Shown piece by piece: positions 13,430-46,134 of a DNA stretch of 64,000 nucleotides (positions are counted from its first letter, which is position 1; the number at the start of each line of letters is the position of its first letter). The position numbers and the translations under genes were made by a program. Source of the DNA: Trichosphaerium sp. ATCC 40318 (lineage: Eukaryota > Protista > Tubulinea). The notes beneath the pieces are model-generated. The model searched no databases. It was given only the letters and a program-made list of their open reading frames with translations, and was not told the DNA's origin. The stretch is taken from the NCBI GenBank assembly GCA_038496445.1, contig JALMLS010000589.1:1-64000 (forward strand), read 5' to 3'.

Positions 13430-13801
13430 TTAGTTTGAATCAGAGTCCACCCATTTACCATGCTCAAATACTTGTATACCAGGGATATTAACCTTTTTTT
13501 TCACAAACGACTGGGTAGATATCAATGTATGAATACCTTTCAATTCTTTGATCCCGTCATCACTAACTGCAGTGAAACAAACTCGAAGAGTATGAACACC
13601 AACTAGTGATTTGATCCCTTCATCAGTAACCATTGTTTTAGAAACATCTATCCAGTGTACACCAGCTAATGCCTTTATACCTTCATCAGTAACTCTAGTA
13701 GCTGATAGATCAATCTCATGTACACCAGACAACGCTTTGATACCTTCATCTGTAACTGAAGGACAGTGATTCAATTTGATGACATGTACATTTGCTTTCA
13801 C
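13430..13801 (-). pseudogene. LRR gene fragment of the GVHTIxLxxTxVTDEGIKAL family, lacking an F-box and an in-frame ATG (locus A)
   Basis: About 4.5 LRR units; an in-frame TAA lies just upstream of the GTG; the ORF ends 28 bp from the MITE terminal repeat. Confidence 0.65.
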
Positions 13802-17010: not shown

Positions 17011-17838
17011 ATGGACAATTGCAGCGCAATCTTTGATATTGAAACAAGCACGTGCTTTGAGGAGATGCCTGTGGAAGTCATTGTTCACATTCTACAGTTT
17101 GTTCCAACTGAAGCAATGCACTCAGTTGTACACACGTGTAAATTACTGTCGACTATTGCGACAAAACACTTGGAGTACAGTGACAATGGAAGAGAAATCA
17201 TAGTAAAATCAGGAAGATATCTCAAGACTTTATTCAAAACTGCACCTTATCTCATCAGAAAATGTACTCTATCTATTCCATTCAAACTCAATCAAAAGCA
17301 TTTAAAGTACTTACAAGGAGTGTACAACCTCAACTTACAACATAATATTTCAAAGAGTATTGACTTTACAGACTTTGAAATAATGACAAAGAGTATTAAC
17401 CTCGGATCAATGAGTTCAATCACTGACGAGCATCTTAAACAACTCTCAGGATGTGGTATTAAAAAGATCTGTCTACGTTGTACAAAGGTGACCGATGAAG
17501 GTGTGAGAGCTTTATCTGGTATTCATACAATTGATCTTACTTCCACTTCAGTTACAGATTATGGTATCAAAGCATTAGCTGGTGTTCATACAATCAACCT
17601 TGAAAAGACAAATGTAACTGATGAAGGTTTAAAGTCATTGGCTGGCGTTCATACCATAGATTTATCATACTGTAAACATGTGACAGATGAAGGTATTAAA
17701 GCTTTATCAGGTGTTCATACAATCAGTTTAAAGTACAATTGCAATGTGACAGATGAAGGCGTAATGGCACTTAAAGGTGCCACTTTTGTTGTTTTGACAC
17801 ATTGTCCTCGGGTTAAGCTTGTACATAAAATAATTTGA
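17011..17838 (+). CDS. Intronless F-box/LRR protein (locus B)
   Basis: F-box-like FEEMPVEVIVHILQFV...VCKLL followed by GVHTIxLxx(C)xxVTDEG repeats; 275-aa uninterrupted ORF. Confidence 0.85.
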   Translation: MDNCSAIFDIETSTCFEEMPVEVIVHILQFVPTEAMHSVVHTCKLLSTIATKHLEYSDNGREIIVKSGRYLKTLFKTAPYLIRKCTLSIPFKLNQKHLKYLQGVYNLNLQHNISKSIDFTDFEIMTKSINLGSMSSITDEHLKQLSGCGIKKICLRCTKVTDEGVRALSGIHTIDLTSTSVTDYGIKALAGVHTINLEKTNVTDEGLKSLAGVHTIDLSYCKHVTDEGIKALSGVHTISLKYNCNVTDEGVMALKGATFVVLTHCPRVKLVHKII

Positions 17839-17925: not shown

Positions 17926-18849
17926 TTACCCTGTATACACTTTAGTTCCCTTTAAATCTTTAGCGACTCCTCTAGTAGCTTTACTTTTGAAGGCGTAAAT
18001 ATAGGATGCACCAACAAGTGCTCTTATGCCTTTATCAGTCACTGAAGTGTTATTGAGGTGAATAGTATGAACTCCAGCAAGTGCTTTGACGCCTTTATCT
18101 GTTACTGAAGTGCATGTGAGGCCAATGGTGTGTACTCCCTTCAGTGCTTTAACACCTTCATCAGTTACTGAAGTGTTATTGAGGTGAATGGAATGCACTC
18201 CTACAAGCGCTATAACACCTTCATCTGTCACTGAGGTCTTTGTGAGATGAATGCAATGAACTCCTTTAAGTGCTTTTATACCTTCATCAGTTACTGAAGT
18301 GTGAGCAAGATTAATAGTATGGACTCCCTTGAGTGCTTTAATACCTTCATCAGTTACTGAAGTGCAAATAAGGAAAATTGTATGAACTCCTTTTAGTGCT
18401 TTTATACCTTCGTCAGTAACTAAAGTTTCACTAAGGTTAATAGTATGAACTCCAGCAAGCGCTTTAATGCCATTGTCAGTTACTGAAGTGTTACCAAGGT
18501 CAATGGTATGAACTCCAGCAAGTGCTTTGACGCCTTCGTCAGTCGCTAAAGTATTGGGAAGGTAAATCTTGTGAACACCAGCAAATAGTTTGATAATGTT
18601 ATCGTCGAAACGACGTCCTTTAAACGTGATTTTTGTGTATTTAAGAACACCAGCATATTTCGCAGCTGATTTTGCTTGAGTTGGCGTTTTAATCGTAATA
18701 GCGTGGTATCCAATAACATCATGAACGATAGAAGCAAGCAAACGACACGTTTGACAAGCTGCAAAGCGCGATTTGGTTGTATGACGCAAGATGTGCACTA
18801 CAATCTCTGTAGGAAGCCACGGCGAACTCTGGTTTGACACGGGAAGCAT
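17926..18849 (-). CDS. Intronless F-box/LRR protein (locus C)
   Basis: Likely start ATG at 18849 (MLPVSNQSSPWLPTEIVVHILR...CQTCRLL); nine 21-aa LRRs; C-terminal cap GASYIYAF...KGTKVYTG. Confidence 0.88.
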   Translation of the reverse strand: MLPVSNQSSPWLPTEIVVHILRHTTKSRFAACQTCRLLASIVHDVIGYHAITIKTPTQAKSAAKYAGVLKYTKITFKGRRFDDNIIKLFAGVHKIYLPNTLATDEGVKALAGVHTIDLGNTSVTDNGIKALAGVHTINLSETLVTDEGIKALKGVHTIFLICTSVTDEGIKALKGVHTINLAHTSVTDEGIKALKGVHCIHLTKTSVTDEGVIALVGVHSIHLNNTSVTDEGVKALKGVHTIGLTCTSVTDKGVKALAGVHTIHLNNTSVTDKGIRALVGASYIYAFKSKATRGVAKDLKGTKVYTG

Positions 18850-18938
18850 ATCAGCTGTAGGCAGTAACACTGGTACGAGGAAATTAAAGTCAACCTTGTT
18901 ATTTCCGCTTTTTGTCAAAAAAACCGTTAACTCCAACA

Positions 18939-21900
18939 ATGCGGTTGTTGGTTTATGCTGTTTTCTTTGTTTTATATTATGGGCTTGTATCGTGTGCCTG
19001 TTATGATTTAGGATACGAGCAAGTAAGGTTTTAATCAATGATACTCTCTTAAAGCGTCTCTAGATGAACGGACCTACCTCCAGAGATGATTTCCAAGCGT
19101 GGATAACAAGTTTAGTGCTAGTCTTACGTAATACTTGACTGTTAACTCTTTATCTTTTGATCTAGAGCTTAGAGACTACAGAGAAAAGGAAATTATCGCT
19201 ATTGGATTCAACGATACGTTTTACGACATACCACAGATTCAATGGACACAAAAAGCCTTCATACAACCCCAAATGATGTCCCATGAACGTTATTTTTACG
19301 ACACAAGTACGTATAGTATACAACCTAGTTTTAGCCTGAAAAGTTTTCCTTTTGTAGCTACACGTGCTTATACTGTTGACAAATACTTGGACGACTTGAA
19401 TGATCGGTATGGTGGTATAGACGCTGTTCTAATATGGCCTACTTATCCCAGTACAATACTATTATGTCCTGTAGCATTGGGTGACATGTTTTTGCCTTAG
19501 ATATTGGTACTGATGATCGAAACCAATACGACTTGATTCGCTCAATGCCTGGTTACCCTGATAAACTACGCGATGCTGTAAATCAGTTTCATAGTCATGG
19601 CGTACGTGTTTTATTCCCATACAATCCATGGGATAAAGGAACACGTGAAGAAGGAGTACCAGATTGGGTAGCAACTGCTCAAGTGTTAAAAGAAATAAAT
19701 GCGGATGGATTCAATGGTGACACTATGGGTGACATTCCAGAAGACTTTTTTCAACAAGGCATAAAGCACGTGACTTCTAAAAATAGTTGCTACTAAATTC
19801 TAATAACTTTAAAGAGAGGGACATCCTATTGTATTAGAAGCAGAAGACCAAGGCAAGCCATCAATTAACCTTATTTGGCAGACATACGGATGGGGATACT
19901 GGTAAGTGCTTTTTGTTCTTCCTTTCTTAGTTTGTTCTGACTTTTTTTTGGCTTCTAGGAGTTATCCTACAATACCTTGTGTATCTACTTTGAAGTGGAT
20001 TGCTCGTAAGCATGTTACGAATGTATGCAATAGATGGAGTACAGATCATACCGATGATCTACAGTTTGCGTTCTTTAACGGCGTCGGTTATGAAAGTTGG
20101 GAAAATGTTTGGGGTATTTGGAACCAAATGGTACCTAGGGATGCTCAAGCACTTAAACGTATTGCTTCAATTCTTCGGTTCTTTGGAACAGATTTTACAA
20201 CACAGAAATGGACACCTCATACACCAGAAGTCATACAAGGTTCGAGGATTTAAATCATTTACAACACAGTTCTTTTCTTTCTCTTAACTAAAGTTGCTAG
20301 ATATGATTTTCGCTTCAAAATTTCAAACTTCCAATGCATCTATTTGGACAATAGTTAACAGATCTTCGAAAAATATGACAGGCGATCAATTGAGAATAAA
20401 AAGAGAAGGAAATACTCGCTATTTCGATGTGTACCATGGTGTAGAACTACAACCAAAACAAGACGGAGAAAATTACATTCTCAGCTTTGATATTGAAGAC
20501 AATGGCTTTGGTGCCGTCTATGCTACATCAACGCCTATAAGTAATACGTTCACTTCTTTTTTGAGCACAATGAAAGACTTGACAAGACATGCGCTTGGCT
20601 ACTATTCCAAAGAATGGACTGTTTTAGAACAAAAAATGATTCCTATTCTTCCTACTCCAGGAGTGCGTTTACTACACTACTGGCGTTACTCTAATATCTA
20701 TTGTTAGGTTTTAAGCGAGCCTACAGGAATGATTAAAATACCTAGCGGACAATTTAACTTTACAGTCAAAGGGATAGAAATTGAAGGTGCTTTCAACTTC
20801 TTTTCAGCACATTTTTAACACCTTTTATTTCATAGGGTATTATCCTAAAGGTGTTGATTTTCAGTATCCGTGGGAATCTTATCCTAGAAGACAACATTCT
20901 AATACTATGACTGTCAAGGAGTTCTTCATTGATAAGTATCCTGTCACAAACAAGAATTTTGAAACTTTCTTGAAGCAAACCAAGTATCAACCGGAAGATA
21001 AAAAAAACTATCTTCGTGATTGGAATGAAAACAACGGAAGTTTTCCTTTAGGTTGGGATAATAAACCAGTAACATGGATTTCATTAGAAGAAGCAAATCT
21101 TTACTGTATAAGTAGGACACCAAAGGCGAGGTACCCAAAAGAATTTTGTTTACTGTTTCCAAGTGCTTGTCGTTTTCGTTTCAAAATCTCTTCGTTTCTT
21201 CTATAATAACTTGTCTCTATAGATTACCTAATGAATGGGAATGGCAATATGCAGCTCAAGGATTAGACGGAAGGATATACCCATGGGGGAACACGTGGAC
21301 CCCAAGTATGTTGTTTTTTATTTTAGTTAAGCAGTGATTTTATGTACTTAACGCCTTAACAGGTAACGTTCCTGTACCCGATAAAGGTGGTAAAATGCGT
21401 GGTCCTGATGACGTAGATGCTCATATAGAAGGTGCATCACCATTTGGTGTAATGGATATGACAGGAAACGTATATCATTGGTATGTTGGTAAATGTCATT
21501 ATTTCTAATCGTGAACAAGGACAAATAAATTTTGTGATGAGCACACGTGCGCAGCAGTAATTCGCGGAGGAAACTATTATACACCATTGGGTATGTTTAA
21601 AACTATTTATTCCGCACTATTTTATTGCTCTCTCTTTGTACGATTCTGAGAACTAGTACTTTCTTCTTATGTCAGGTGAAACTTTACTTCGTGTATCAGT
21701 CAAATTACGCTGGCTTCAAAAAAACCCCAACTGTACCCTCTTTCATTTCTGAGCCCAAAGTCAACGCTTTCAAACAACCATCTGAATTTTCCTGAAGCCA
21801 TAAATGCATTGAATTTACTGCCTTCAACAGCAAAAACAACCGTGTTTGAAATGTAGCTACAAACAAGTGGTGTTTTGTTTCAAAGTAGTGGATATTCATC

Positions 21901-22040: not shown

Positions 22041-22115
22041 TAAACAAAATCATGTCAAACATTTTTCAATTGAAGTTATCCTCCTTTTCTATTTCTAGGA
22101 GGTATTACTGATGCA

Positions 22116-22465
22116 TTACTGTGATAAAACTGCTTTGAAACTTGAGGACAATGTGTAAAACCGATGTGATAAATCTATGGTATGAACGCCAGCCAATGAC
22201 TTTAAACCTTCATCAGTTACATTTGTCTTTTCAAGGTTGATTGTATGAACACCAGCCAATGCTTTGATACCATAATCTGTAACTGAAGTGGAAGTAAGAT
22301 CAATTGTATGAATACCAGATAAAGCTCTCACCTTCATCGCTCACCTTTGTACAACGCAGACAGATCTTTTTAATACCACATCCTGAGAGTTGTTTAAGAT
22401 GATCGTCAGTGACTGAACTCATTGATCCGAGGTTAATACTCTTTGTCATTATTTCAAAATCTGTC
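22116..22465 (-). pseudogene. Inverted partial duplicate of F-box/LRR locus B (locus D)
   Basis: The reverse complement is near-identical to about 17368-17667, with a 2-bp deletion (gtgtgaga>gtgaga), then jumps to B's terminal ACACATTGTCCTC, skipping about two repeats. No F-box. Confidence 0.9.
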
Positions 22466-23095: not shown

Positions 23096-24241
23096 TTAAT
23101 ACCTTCTGAGGTGAATCTTATGAACTCCAACAAGTGCTTTAATACCTTCATCTGTTACTGAAGTATTTTCGAGGTTAATCCTATGAACTCCAGCGAGTGC
23201 TCTAATGCCTTTGTCAGTCACTGAAGTGTTATTGAGGTTAATAGTATGAACTCCAGCAAGTGCTTTAATACCTTCATCAGTCACTGAAGTATTTTCGAGG
23301 TTAATCCTATGAACTCCAGCGAGTGCTCTAGCGCCTTCATCAGTTATTAAAGTGTTATCAAGGTCAATTATATGAACTCCAGCAAGTGCTTTAATGCCTT
23401 CATCAGTTACTGAAGTGTTACCAAGGTCAATAGTATGAACTCCACCAAGTGCTTTAACGCCTTTGTCAGTTACTGAAGTGTGACAAAGGCCAATAGTATG
23501 AACTCCACCAAGTGCTTTAATACCTTCATCAGTTGCTGAAGTGCCATTGAGGCGAATGGTATGAACTCCAGCGAGTGCTTTAACGCCTTTATCAGTTACT
23601 GAAGTGTTATTGAGGTGAATGGTATGAACTCCAGCGAGTGCTTTAATGCCTTCATTAGTTACTGAAGTGTTAGCAACGTGAATAGTATGAACACCAACAA
23701 GTGCTTTAATACCTTCATCAGTTACTGAAGTGTTACAAAGGTCAATAGTATGGACACCAGCAAGTGCTTTAACGCTTTCGTCAGTTGCTGAAGTGCGACA
23801 AAGGTCAATAGTATGGACACCCTTCAGTGCTATAACGCCTTTGTCAGTTACTGAAGTGTTATAGAGGGATATAGTATGAACTCCAGCAAGTGCTTTAACG
23901 CCTTCGTCAGTTACTGAAGTGTTATTGAGGGAAATAGTACGAACTCCAGCAAATGCTTTGACAGTGTTGTCATAAAAATAAGATACTGAGATTTTTGTGT
24001 ATTTAAGAATCCCAGGATGTTTTACAGCTGATTTTGCTTGAGTTGGCGTTTTAATCGTAATAGCGTGGTATCCAATAACATCGTGAATAATAGAAGCAAG
24101 CAAATGACATGTCTGACAAGCTGCAAATCGCGATTTGGTCGTTTGACGTAAGATATGCGCTAATATCTCTGTCGGTAGCTGTAACAAACTTGTGCTGGTG
24201 GTACTGTCAATTCTACAACCCTTTGAGGTAGAAAGCATCAT
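23096..24241 (-). CDS. Intronless F-box/LRR protein (locus E), 13 full repeats, C-terminal cap lost by a small deletion
   Basis: LLQLPTEILAHILRQTTKSRFAACQTCHLL then 63-nt tandem LRR units. The last unit reads CACCTCA|GAAGGTATTAAAGCA (about 20 nt missing), leaving the cap homologue (GCACTTATCGGGGCAAAA...) out of frame at about 23040-23095. Confidence 0.9.
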   Translation of the reverse strand: MMLSTSKGCRIDSTTSTSLLQLPTEILAHILRQTTKSRFAACQTCHLLASIIHDVIGYHAITIKTPTQAKSAVKHPGILKYTKISVSYFYDNTVKAFAGVRTISLNNTSVTDEGVKALAGVHTISLYNTSVTDKGVIALKGVHTIDLCRTSATDESVKALAGVHTIDLCNTSVTDEGIKALVGVHTIHVANTSVTNEGIKALAGVHTIHLNNTSVTDKGVKALAGVHTIRLNGTSATDEGIKALGGVHTIGLCHTSVTDKGVKALGGVHTIDLGNTSVTDEGIKALAGVHIIDLDNTLITDEGARALAGVHRINLENTSVTDEGIKALAGVHTINLNNTSVTDKGIRALAGVHRINLENTSVTDEGIKALVGVHKIHLRRY

Positions 24242-36648: not shown

Positions 36649-37129
36649 TGTTTCTTTAATAAAGTTTACATAGCAGTCTTCTTATGCTTTGTGAAAGCAT
36701 TTCTATCCGTTTATATTTGGAGCGTTAAACTTACCGCATGTGTGCAAAGATGTGGTGTGAGTGGACATCAATAGGTATACCCTATGTCGTTTTTCTAGCT
36801 TCAACAAAGACTTGGTAACATGTTCCAACCTAAATCAAAACATAACATATTAACCTTAATTTGCACCCTAGTGTTTTAAGTCTAGTGATAGCTTTAATAT
36901 TGGTGTACCACAGAAAAGGATAAATCTATTTATTATTGGTACGAATACAAGTCATGTGGATTCAATGATTATTCATAAATGTTGATGCTGATACCCAACT
37001 ATCTTTTTTTTTTGAGTAGTCTGGAATTGAACCATTTACAATATGGAGTTGGCTTTACTTACTTCGACTGGCTATTTTCATACCAGGACTTGTATTCTCC
37101 TCCTCTTGTTTACCATTGATGTAATTACA

Positions 37130-37838
37130 TTATTCATATAATTGGCCATTTTCACGCCACCTCGATTCTCCTTTCCACTTACCATTGACATAATGACTCA
37201 GTCTTTCTAATTTGCCACTTTTATACCACTTCTTGCTTTCTCCTTCTTTTTCACCATTGACGTAAGTACACAGTGTCCTCAATTGGCCATTTTGATACCA
37301 CCTCCTGCATTCTCCTTCTTGTATATAATTGATGTAATCACACTGTTCAAATAGTTGACCATTTTCATACCACCTCTTATATTCTCCTTCTTGTTTATCA
37401 TTGATGTAATTACGCTGTTCATGAAGTTGACCATTTTCATACCATCTCTTATATTCTCCTTCCCACTTACCATTGACGTAATTACACTGCCTATGTAATT
37501 GACCACTTTCATACCAGACCTTGTATTCTCCTTCTTGTGTACCATGTTCCCAGTATTGTTGCATTACAATATGGTTGTTCGCTATTTGTTGCCATTTACC
37601 ATGCTTTTTCAAGTCGCCATCAAACCTTGATGTCAATGCTGTCTGTTTTGAAAGAAGAGGCCAAAGCAAATACAATGACATGTCTAAATCAATAATATCG
37701 AGTTGAATCTCGACTGGAAGGCGTAAAAGATGGCAATCATCTGATTGTACACTAAATACCTACGTGTTTGCTGTTACATGCTTCAAATTGTGATTAAATT
37801 GCTTGTACCTTGTTATTTATACTAAGAATCGCTTGCAT
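37130..37838 (-). CDS. F-box-like + MORN-variant (YwqK-like) repeat protein with a degenerate 3' end
   Basis: MQAILSINNK|VFSVQSDDCHLLRLPVEIQLDIIDLD then 24-aa repeats CNYINGKxEGEYKRWYENGQLxEQ. After the TAA at 37130 another repeat continues with a frameshift to about 37065. Confidence 0.8.
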
Positions 37839-38136: not shown

Positions 38137-39015
38137 ATGAATAGTGCTTTGAAATCAGGTTATTGCCACTTATTAAACCTTCCCCTTGAGCTACAGCATT
38201 ATATTATCAATTTAGACTATACAGTTTACATAAAGTGGCCTCTCTTATCCAAAATTACAGCAACAACAACAAGGTTTGATAATGAGCTTAAGAAACACGG
38301 GAAATGGATAAAAACAAAAGTAACAGCTTCTTCTGGCTTGGGAAAGCCCAAGCTATGTATTTTGGTAAACACGTGCTTGTTTTAAAGTGAAACGACAAAA
38401 TCTCTTAAGTTATTTGTTTAGGCAGAGGATACTTTAAGGCATGGTGTATTTCATGGGGTATACAAGCGATGGGATAAACAAGGAAACTTGCTTCAGCAGT
38501 GTTATTATGTAGATGGTATAGTTGAAGGAGAATTTCAGACATGGTATGTCAATGGCAAGTTGAAAAGCAAGCGTCATTACATCAATGGTAAAAAAGAAGG
38601 AGAATGTAAAGCTTGGTATTTTAATGGCCAACTGCATCAACAATATCATTGCATAAACGGTTTAGTTGAAGGAGATTACAAGACTTGGTACTACAATGGA
38701 CAAATCGGCAGTCAATGTAATTATGTCAATGGTAAAAAAGAAGGAGAGTACAAGGCATGGTATGACAATGGTATGTTAAGAATAAAGTTCAATGTTGTTA
38801 ATGGTAAACGCCATGGTGAATACAAAGAATGGTATAGAACCGGTCAACTCCATTGTCAAACTATGATAAGATATGGTAGGCGATATGGACGGTACAAAGA
38901 GTGGTCTATCAATGGTCAGCTACGTACAAATGTTGTGTATGGTGACTCATGGCAATATTGGATTATTGTGCTTGTAGTATTAGTGTTCATTGCCTATTAT
39001 TTATGGGCTTTCTGA
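38137..39015 (+). CDS. F-box-like + MORN-variant repeat protein with a C-terminal transmembrane anchor
   Basis: CHLLNLPLELQHYIINLD...RFDNELKKHGKW (paralogous to the previous gene); one intron at about 38320-38421; about 6 MORN-variant units; tail WIIVLVVLVFIAYYLWAF. Confidence 0.82.
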
Positions 39016-43596: not shown

Positions 43597-44463
43597 TCAC
43601 AAAATATAGCTTGAGCTAGGGTGAAAACGAACATAGCATGCAGCAAGTGCTTCAATATCCTTTTCAGTTATTGATGTGTTACCAAGGTGAATAGTATGAA
43701 CTCCCTTCAGTGCTTTGACACCTTCATCTGTTATATTTCGACATCCATTGAGGCGTATATCATATACACCCTTCAGTGCCTTTATACCTTCATCAGTTAC
43801 TGAAGTGCCCCTGAGGTTAATAGTGTGAACTCCAGCAAGTGATTTAATACCTTCATCAGTTACTAGAGTTCTATACAGGCTAATGGTATGTACTCCCGCA
43901 AGCGCTTTGACACCTTCATCAGTTATGTTTTTACATCCATTGAGGCGTATTGAATACACGCCCTTCAGTGCGTTAATGCCTTCATCAGTAACTGAAGTGT
44001 TATGAAGGGAAATAGTATGAACTCCCTTCAGTGCTTTAATACCTTCATCTGTAACTGAAGTGTAACCAAGGTAAATAGTATGAACTCCACCAAGTGCTGT
44101 GACGCCTTTATCAGTTACTGAAGTACCAATGAAATGTATAGAATGAACTCCAGCAAGTGCTTTGACACCTTCATCTGTCACATTTTTGCATCTATAAAGG
44201 ACAATAGTATGAACTCCAGCAAATTGTTTAATATCATCTCCAGAATTATATCCTACAATGATCTTTGTGTATCTCAGAATACCAGGATGTTTTACAGCTG
44301 ATTTTGCTTGAGTTGGCGTTCTAATCATAATAGCGCGGTATCCAATAACATCGTGAATGATAGAAGCAAGCAAATGACAGGTTTGACACGCTGCAAATCG
44401 TGATTTGGTCGTTTGACGTAAGATGTGTGCTAATATCTCTGTAGGTAGCTGTAACAAACTCAT
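43597..44463 (-). CDS. Intronless F-box/LRR protein (locus F)
   Basis: MSLLQLPTEILAHILRQTTKSRFAACQTCHLL, near-identical to the N-terminus of E; nine LRRs of mixed 21- and 22-aa types. Confidence 0.9.
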   Translation of the reverse strand: MSLLQLPTEILAHILRQTTKSRFAACQTCHLLASIIHDVIGYRAIMIRTPTQAKSAVKHPGILRYTKIIVGYNSGDDIKQFAGVHTIVLYRCKNVTDEGVKALAGVHSIHFIGTSVTDKGVTALGGVHTIYLGYTSVTDEGIKALKGVHTISLHNTSVTDEGINALKGVYSIRLNGCKNITDEGVKALAGVHTISLYRTLVTDEGIKSLAGVHTINLRGTSVTDEGIKALKGVYDIRLNGCRNITDEGVKALKGVHTIHLGNTSITEKDIEALAACYVRFHPSSSYIL

Positions 44464-45261
44464 TTGCAGAATTTTCGAACGTGATGGCCCTATCTGAAGG
44501 TAAAAATATACCTTTCTTGCAATACAGATACGTGTAGTAGCTTTGAACGCGAGTTAACTGTGATAAAGCAAAGTATCAGACTTGACTTAAGAGATGTGTT
44601 AAGTAGGTAGATTAACGAAAACGAATGACGGAAGTTCACGCCTTTGTTTTATTAGCTCCGAAAAGGGCGCCAAAACATGATTTCTTCAAAATACACCGAT
44701 GTAGTCTACCTCTAAGTTTACTGTAGCAGTTAATTACGCGTGTTTCGTATTTTCGAAGGTGGACACGTGATGATCACGTGACTTAAATTCTTAATAAAAA
44801 AGCAACTTTAAACGTTGCCTTCTAAATAAACACATCTAGATGTGATGGTGTGTTCTTACGTTGATTTGGTCCGTTTAGGCCACTGGACGTGTACTGGTGT
44901 GAACAAAAAGTGCATCAAATCACAGACCATTCTTAATTACGTTGGTACTACATGTTCATTGGAACATGTGACCCCTGAAATTTGCCAACAAATATCATGA
45001 TGAGCTACACACCCACAGAGCTCAGGTACATACTCTAACAATCGGTTCAATAACAGTACCAACTGGGGAAGCATATTATACTGTGACCCAATTGTAGAAT
45101 CATGTGCGGGAGGTTAATATTTTGAGAACTGGTACTCAGCGCAAATGGGCGTGTTGTTTTACAACAAGAATAAAAATTGGGTTTTTAAAGAGCGTGGCAT
45201 CAGTTTTTTTTAAAGTCAATAAAAACGTTGAAAAGTGCATACATAAAATATTTCGAAAATT

Positions 45262-46134
45262 ATGCTTTCTGCCTCACCATGTTGTAAAATTGACAATACC
45301 GCCAGTACAAGTTTGTTACACCTCCCTACAGAGATTTAGCACACATCTTACGTCAAACGACCAAATCACGATTTGCAGCGTGTCAGACATGTCATTTGCT
45401 TGCTTCTATCGTTCACGATGTTATTGGATACCACGCTATTATGATTAGAACGCCAACTCAAGCAAAATCAGCTGTAAAACATCCTGGGATTCTTAAATAC
45501 ACAGAAATCACAGGAGCACGCTATTTTGATGACAACGTTATCAAACAATTTGCTGGAGTTCGTACCATTTGCCTCAATTGCAATTTATTAACAGATGAAG
45601 GTGTCAAAGCGCTGAAGGGAGTTCATTCTATTTTCCTCAGTGGCTCTTCAGTTACAGACGAAGGCGTCAAAGCACTTGCTGGAGTTCATATTATTAATCT
45701 TAGTTGCACTTCAGTAACTGACAACGGTGTTAAAGCACTTGCTGGAGTACACTATTTATCTCAGTAACACTTCGGTGACTGACAAAGGAATTGAAGCACT
45801 CGCTGGAGTTCATACTATTCACCTCTATCATACTTTAGTTACAGATGAAGGTATAAAAGCACTTGCTGGAGTTCATACTATTAATCTTGATGGCACTTCA
45901 GTAACTGATAAAGGAGTTAAAGCACTCGCTGGAGTTCATAAGATTAACCTCAATAACACTTCAGTAACTGATGAAGGTATTAAAGCACTCAAGGGTGTTC
46001 ATACTATTCACCTCAATAACACTTCAGTAACTGATGAAGGTATTAAAGCACTTGTTGGGGCAAAATATATTTTTGCGTATGGTAGTAATGTAAAAGGGGT
46101 CGTAGTGTTAAAAGGGACAAAGGTTAATTTTTAA
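45262..46134 (+). pseudogene. Frameshifted F-box/LRR gene (locus G), divergent from F
   Basis: The start MLSASPCCKIDNTASTSLLHLPTEI aligns with E. A 1-bp deletion at about 45335 (gagatttagc vs gagatattagc) and a second shift at about 45750 split the ORF in three. The C-terminal cap is intact. Confidence 0.82.

Follow-up and report, generated by a model that had tools for sequence, protein, structure and literature searches.

Receptors of Skp1-cullin-F-box (SCF) ubiquitin ligases of the FBXL type (Skp2, FBXL2, plant TIR1/COI1) join an N-terminal F-box to a solenoid of leucine-rich repeats (LRRs) of the cysteine-containing (CC) lineage with a TxVTDxG motif. In the LRRs of plant nucleotide-binding LRR (NLR) resistance (R) genes, the hypervariable xxLxLxx residues are reportedly under diversifying selection. 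Expanded F-box families of nematodes and plants are described as having the F-box under purifying selection and the substrate-recognition domain under positive selection (Thomas 2006, as cited in PMC8120010; PMC3719486). F-box/LRR proteins also occur in giant viruses (PMC10521059; PMC5753266) and in bacteria, where no selection other than purifying was detected in the chlamydial NEX1 family, with a global ratio of nonsynonymous to synonymous divergence (dN/dS) of 0.29-0.63 (PMC4209131). Here, we report the analysis of an F-box/LRR gene, locus E, of Trichosphaerium sp. ATCC 40318, in which three codons of each repeat vary in a manner reminiscent of diversity-generating retroelements (DGRs). This codon pattern likely results from young tandem units, from gene conversion in patches, and from diversifying selection acting at the concave face of a probable SCF receptor. 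The gene lies in a 64,000-nucleotide (nt) stretch of contig JALMLS010000589.1 (assembly GCA_038496445.1, positions 1 to 64,000, forward strand), the whole of which is called the window and supplies all coordinates below.

Locus E (23096-24241, minus strand) is a complete, intron-free open reading frame (ORF) encoding 381 amino acids (aa), which are laid out as an F-box, a linker, and 14 LRR units, each 21 residues long (ORF list, translation, and Pfam). The F-box, the presumed Skp1-binding module, spans 24065-24187 (minus strand; aa 19-59) and begins LLQLPTEILAHIL; it is recognized by Pfam model PF00646 (8.2e-5; 22.8 bits, cutoff 20.5; aa 19-56) and, slightly below the cutoff of 24.3 bits, by the F-box-like model PF12937 (3.7e-5; 23.8 bits; aa 20-59). 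It is kept in the paralogues, in MMETSP transcripts, and in a giant-virus metagenome-assembled genome (MAG), and its LPxEIL motif is kept in the paralogues. The stretch from the F-box to LRR unit 1, a conserved linker and N-terminal cap (23969-24064, minus strand; aa 60-91, HAITIKT...YFYD), can be aligned across paralogues and is modeled by AlphaFold2 (AF2) as short strands and helices, with a predicted local distance difference test score (pLDDT) of 64-70. The LRR array with its stop codon (23096-23968, minus strand; Tandem Repeats Finder [TRF] and codon table) consists of 14 units of 63 nt, the last truncated by the stop; TRF delimits it at 23108-23959 (period, 63 nt; 13.5 copies; 83% matches), and it matches Pfam LRR_6 (PF13516) at 1.2e-22. 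A single-sequence AF2 model renders the array as an LRR solenoid (pLDDT, ~90) in which each unit contributes a strand and a helix, the strands lying over unit positions 11-15. Foldseek searches with the model gave more than 500 LRR matches at an E value of ≤1e-3, including FBXL2-SKP1 (6o60), COI1-ASK1 (3ogl), and the LRR domain of Ralstonia RipG4 (9j7j). The protein is most likely the substrate receptor of an SCF ubiquitin ligase: the F-box would dock on Skp1, and the 14-unit solenoid would present some 40 variable side chains, three from each unit, as a substrate-binding surface. It differs from FBXL-type receptors in its unit of 21 residues (versus ~26), its extreme copy number, and its three hypervariable positions per unit.

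Locus E belongs to a very large F-box/LRR family, specific to its lineage, in this marine amoeba. Searches of its own genome covered an assembly of 70.3 Mb in 642 contigs (the draft genome is described as 70.87 Mb with a GC content of 37.7% [PMC10521059]). The size of this assembly and its eukaryotic rRNA genes speak against a bacterial source such as an amoeba-associated chlamydia. The locus E protein gave 152 matches there from 2472 first-look candidates, and a degenerate DNA pattern for G-V-H-T-I-x-L-x-x-T gave 2399 genome matches versus 0 for the reversed control.

In register, the LRR unit reads E-G-I-K-A-L-A-G-V-H-T-I-x5-L-x7-x8-T-S-V-T-D, with the variable residues x5, x7, and x8 (unit positions 13, 15, and 16) named on the LRR consensus LxxLxLxxN. 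The 14 variable 12-nt windows (x5-Leu-x7-x8; codon table) lie on the minus strand, the first at 23921-23932, the others at 23921-63k to 23932-63k (k = 1 to 13), and the last at 23102-23113. They read NNC-CTY-NNT-NNC: x5 is NNC in 14/14 units, x7 is NNT in 11/14 (with GAA twice and AGA once), and x8 is NNC in 11/14. An earlier reading of the window from its letters and ORFs (the original prediction) had pointed out this pattern, and every codon that it listed for locus E was recovered in register. The near-invariant flanking frame that it described is confirmed by a scaffold pairwise difference of 0.12 at codon positions 1 and 2, and the same trend, claimed for the paralogous loci C, F, and G, was seen there in weaker form.

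It had further stated that the third base stays fixed while positions 1 and 2 change. The pattern is present; special fixation is not, as the third base is no more conserved than scaffold silent sites. Pairwise comparison of the 13 complete units of locus E gave mean differences at the variable codons of 0.637 (position 1), 0.453 (position 2), and 0.188 (position 3), the last falling between two-fold (0.165) and four-fold (0.253) scaffold silent sites. The mean over 47 arrays was 0.401 for the third base of the variable codons, if anything higher than for scaffold silent sites (0.318 and 0.208). In a set of 634 units (50 genes), 69% of x5 codons and 59% of x8 codons ended in C, and 71% of x7 codons ended in T. 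The share of C in Y-ending two-fold codons was 0.73 at x5, 0.70 at x8, and 0.13 at x7, compared with 0.14-0.15 for scaffold His/Asp codons and 0.36 for non-LRR parts. This C/T preference preserves, position by position, the codons of an ancestral AAC-CTY-AAT-AAC unit. Which third base is fixed depends on the lineage (T at all three codons in paralogues L062 [11/11] and L029 [17/17]; TCA at x7 in L017 [16/19]), and within a subfamily the third bases of the variable codons run in step with the scaffold silent sites. The third-base pattern therefore reflects young, tandemly amplified units and not a constraint or mechanism acting on the third base.

The truly nonrandom feature is the excess of change at positions 1 and 2 of x5, x7, and x8. 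Amino acid entropy was 3.0-3.45 bits at these residues versus 0.1-2.1 bits at other unit positions, and the hypervariable sites (entropy peaks at 13, 15, and 16; model strands at 11-15) coincide with predicted exposed beta-strand positions, exposure being taken from standard LRR geometry. Since I12 and L14 would lie in the core under that geometry, x5 and x7, which alternate with them, should face the concave side and x8 should lie at the strand exit. Residues at x5 (634 units) were mostly D (141), N (125), Y (123), S (64), and H (50), with few hydrophobic residues and no proline; Y, H, N, and D, encoded by NAY, made up 69%, and K (11), E (6), and Q (3) together made up 20/634 units.

Recent copies record how the arrays change. 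Seven gene pairs were 95-99.9% identical, and those of 98-99% identity contained whole-codon swaps (AAC to GGT, CGT to GAC) and patches, with an identical four-base change (T GCT to C/G AAG) in two units of one pair. Such patchy multinucleotide replacements are the mark left by conversion between units or between paralogues. Tandem block duplication is visible in locus C, with TRF periods of 126 and 189 nt, and in locus E, where units 10-11 and 12-13 look like a two-unit duplication. In 12 independent close pairs, silent divergence (dS, Nei-Gojobori) was 0.129 in the LRR array, which is 3.6 times that in the F-box and linker (0.036). The genes of the family are mosaics, in which either the arrays were reshuffled or the N-terminal part was homogenized.

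Selection was assessed in the same 12 pairs and with a codon model (GY94+F1X4) fitted by maximum likelihood (ML) to each partition on a fixed tree (IQ-TREE), in sets of 5 genes (38 columns at the variable codons) and 19 genes (24 columns). ML omega was 3.0 (5 genes) and 2.5 (19 genes) at the variable codons, 0.24 and 0.17 in the scaffold, and 0.83 and 0.36 in non-LRR parts. Omega = 1 was rejected at the variable codons (2dlnL, 10.7, P = 0.001 for 5 genes; 25.4, P = 5e-7 for 19 genes) under models that assume no recombination. In the pairs, dN was 0.020 in non-LRR parts (dS, 0.036), 0.039 in the scaffold (dS, 0.129), and 0.24-0.25 at x5, x7, and x8 (own-codon dS, 0.22-0.26), so that the ratio of variable-codon dN to scaffold silent sites was ~1.9. 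There is thus a site-specific excess of nonsynonymous change at x5, x7, and x8, and we infer that selection raises omega above 1. Diversifying selection plus repeat homogenization, the reading that the original prediction had favored, is supported by the contrast in omega (2.5-3.0 versus 0.17-0.24) and by the conversion-type patches.

Several points weigh against it. With only the silent sites of the variable codons themselves as reference, dN/dS in the 12 pairs is 0.9-1.15 (0.92, 1.15, and 1.03); recombination inflates likelihood tests for omega > 1; and a process targeting codon positions 1 and 2 is not fully separable from selection by sequence alone. The raised own-codon dS at x5 and x8 may stem from the decay of C-ending codons in a T-preferring genome and from whole-codon conversion. 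A dN/dS of about 1, like the evident conversion patches, is also what would be seen under relaxed constraint, with the three exposed positions drifting freely while tandem duplication and concerted evolution keep the rest, silent sites included, uniform; given the 3.6-fold silent divergence of the LRR part, much of the difference would then be shuffled standing variation. This explanation appears unlikely in view of the ML omega of 2.5-3.0 with omega = 1 rejected, of a 2- to 4-fold excess of differences at variable positions 1 and 2 over scaffold silent sites, and of an amino acid spectrum so strongly filtered that selection must act on the variable positions.

In the proposed course of events, arrays would grow by tandem duplication of one-, two-, or three-unit blocks, and all their silent positions, including the variable-codon third bases, would therefore be young, near-identical, and of the AAC-CTY-AAT-AAC type ancestral to this subfamily. 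Selection would keep point changes at positions 1 and 2 of the three exposed codons, with the accepted residues forming a restricted polar/aromatic set (D, N, Y, S, H, G, R, C), all reachable from AAY with the third base unchanged, and short gene-conversion patches would carry whole variable codons between units and paralogues. Such a course agrees with the expanded F-box families described in PMC8120010 (citing Thomas 2006) and with LRR receptors generally. What remains is a clear, conventional picture: probable ubiquitin-ligase adaptors have expanded into a large family, and their binding face changes at 2.5-3 times the rate of silent DNA.

DGRs of the Bordetella phage BPP-1 Mtd type share with locus E their AAY-rich variable codons, which change at positions 1 and 2 and avoid stop codons, and the original prediction had remarked on a resemblance to their adenine-directed mutagenesis. 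A DGR-like system would have a reverse transcriptase (RT) copy an invariant AAC-CTY-AAT-AAC template with errors at adenines, the copy then replacing the variable stretch. The NNC-CTY-NNT-NNC pattern with its AAY plurality mimics DGR variable repeats, omega > 1 would also be expected, as adenines are at codon positions 1 and 2, and the genome holds many RTs. A DGR-like mutator on eukaryotic LRR genes would have been unprecedented, and the tests argue against it, since adenine specificity is absent and no DGR parts were found in the searches described below. Substitutions tabulated by consensus base and codon position (634 units, 50 genes) showed no adenine bias: scaffold departure from the consensus was 0.132 for A, 0.138 for C, 0.122 for G, and 0.224 for T, which places adenines among the least variable bases, and in locus E scaffold A sites were the least variable (0.051). 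Variable sites within arrays varied at least as much when the majority base was G, C, or T (0.49) as when it was A (0.36). Confinement of the mutagenesis to about 12 nt, which had also been considered, fares no better: inside that stretch, the A at x5 position 2 departs in 28% of units, versus 29-41% for non-A third bases.

That A is thus kept in ~72% of units, and position 1 of x5 is nearly uniform (entropy, 1.19 bits at position 2 versus 1.92 bits at position 1). An adenine-misreading polymerase should hit both positions alike, so the asymmetry argues against a DGR; it arises from the genetic code, in which NAY codons give the favored Y, H, N, and D. In L062, x7 is AGT in 11/11 units while x5 and x8 vary, leaving a fixed A inside a variable codon.

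The assembly was also searched for DGR parts. The accessory protein Avd (model NF033474) had no match in the whole 70 Mb. RVT_1 had more than 150 matches in the genome (best 150 of 205 candidates scored), with none on the contig of locus E among the matches listed; the six best-scoring RT ORFs are of the long interspersed nuclear element (LINE) type (RVT_1 in 6/6, RNase H in 4/6, AP endonuclease in 2/6), and no DGR-type RT was found among the RT ORFs examined. Of the template and RT that the prediction had envisaged, RTs are thus plentiful, and no template differing at the variable sites was found near locus E. The sole template-like object there is a pseudogene fragment at 22094-22394, 0.8 kb from locus E, an inverted partial copy (~230 nt) of the F-box/LRR gene at 17011-17838. 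The arms of the inversion, at 17503-17667 and 22167-22331, have 99% complementarity; the fragment carries three substitutions and a frame-breaking 2-nt deletion, and it shows no difference at any variable codon.

Copies that are otherwise identical show no ongoing diversification in the two closest pairs, L007/L008 and L041/L042 (27 units), each with a single scaffold base difference and together with 0/81 variable codons changed. The host has eukaryotic small-subunit (SSU) rRNA and thus does not match the prokaryotic, phage, or plasmid hosts of DGRs; the family is nuclear, and it has thousands of variable windows instead of one, on a eukaryotic LRR scaffold and not on a C-type lectin or immunoglobulin (Ig) fold, and no template/variable repeat pair was found. 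A DGR-like origin, contradicted on four of the five defining features tested (adenine-only differences, Avd, ongoing diversification, and host type), is barely credible. Variation of the NNY type at positions 1 and 2 of AAY-derived codons is to be expected from young repeats selected for polar binding residues, and it should be read as a DGR signature only if other parts of the repeat show adenine specificity.

Another targeted process, not specific for adenine, could act by hypermutation or preferential microconversion at the 12-nt stretch, with selection only filtering its products. Variable codons in pairs of 98-99% identity show ~3-fold more differences per nucleotide than the scaffold, and 4/14 changed variable codons carry at least two differences; per site, the values in these pairs were ~4.0% at variable positions 1 and 2, 2.2% at variable third bases, and 2.0% at scaffold third bases. 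In the 47 arrays and the 12 close pairs, too, variable third bases change slightly faster than scaffold silent sites. Coding divergence in these pairs (1.4-1.6%) is similar to that of the flanks (0.4-2.0%), and the coding region is therefore not hypermutated. A regional hot spot at the 12-nt stretch was rejected, as silent sites inside it (cod14.3, 0.139) and beside it (cod12.3, 0.086; cod17.3, 0.046) are ordinary relative to the scaffold (0.119). These silent sites, the two near-identical pairs without variable-codon change, and an excess that, at only ~2 times the silent rate, falls far short of known hypermutation systems make such a process very unlikely. We give still less credit to the idea that the three-codon windows are targets of directed diversification in a eukaryote or its giant viruses, for example by microconversion or hypermutation centered on the 12-nt windows; if true, it would make the F-box/LRR family a generated, and not merely selected, recognition repertoire feeding ubiquitylation.

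The best relatives of locus E outside the genome are MMETSP and JGI transcripts with ≤47% identity and the same architecture; relatives retain CxxITDxG units. A giant-virus MAG contig (IMG/VR GVMAG-M-3300007519-48; L061:3001-4056) encodes a protein 42% identical to locus E over aa 20-378, with an F-box and 21-residue units with a VHTIxLxxT core, in which x5, x7, and x8 also vary. As judged by sequence, the family is common to Trichosphaerium and giant viruses. Next to giant-virus F-box/LRR proteins (PMC10521059; PMC5753266), the family of the amoeba is much the larger, and its pattern at the codon level is not known to have been described. Given these viral relatives, a host-virus conflict interface is plausible, though unproven, and the family is a reasonable candidate for one in a little-studied marine amoeba.

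Other comparisons are more distant. With plant NLR/R-gene LRRs, the family shares hypervariability at solvent-exposed beta-strand positions, omega > 1, and birth-and-death with sequence exchange between paralogues; unlike plant NLRs, the Trichosphaerium proteins are without an NB-ARC or TIR signaling domain, and their output would be ubiquitylation. With the nematode and plant expansions, it shares lineage-specific growth, an F-box under purifying selection, and a positively selected recognition domain; recognition in those families is mostly by FTH, FBA, kelch, or other domains, whereas Trichosphaerium uses a regular LRR lattice in a unicellular amoeba. Chlamydial NEX1 (PMC4209131) and the GALA/RipG effectors of Ralstonia (PMC2244805) have an F-box, a conserved linker, a variable LRR number, and large expansions in amoeba-associated organisms. 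Unlike the amoeba family, both are bacterial effectors, and the selection regime of NEX1 also differs; no close sequence relationship of locus E to either was seen in the search for outside relatives.

The window is AT rich (GC, 0.34-0.39) with few long ORFs. At least six family copies in both orientations lie in a 33-kb part of it, at 13430-13801 (minus), 17011-17838 (plus), 17926-19038 (minus), 23096-24241 (minus; locus E), 43597-44463 (minus), and 45104-46134 (plus), so the family is both locally clustered and dispersed over many contigs. Of these paralogues, locus C (17926-19038, minus strand; ORF list) has TRF periods of 63, 126, and 189 nt, and locus F (43597-44463, minus strand) was delimited by the ORF list, TRF, and codon comparison. 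Locus G (45104-46134, plus strand) consists of three overlapping ORFs in different frames (45104-45448, 45396-45767, and 45727-46134), with a unit spacing of 124 nt, not 126 nt, between 45660 and 45784, and is probably either a pseudogene with a frameshift or a product of misassembly.

Between loci C and E, a run of short ORFs in shifting frames (19135-21337, plus strand) resembles the exons of an intron-containing gene; one piece holds the motif YPWGNTW, which we take to be reminiscent of formylglycine-generating-enzyme/sulfatase-modifying domains. Two divergent arrays of MORN-like 72-nt (24-aa) repeats with a YxNGxxEGxxxxW-like motif lie at 37069-37545 (minus strand) and 38574-38771 (plus strand). 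F-box and MORN are the commonest domains among putative giant-virus-derived genes of the Trichosphaerium genome (PMC10521059), and the window holds both domain types. Elsewhere in the assembly, at least 10 dispersed copies of an unusually long (~2.65 kb) eukaryotic SSU rRNA gene were found (contigs C481, C177, C410, C581, C75, C6, C176, C46, C34, and C592), in line with the 22 dispersed copies given in the genome paper (PMC10521059).

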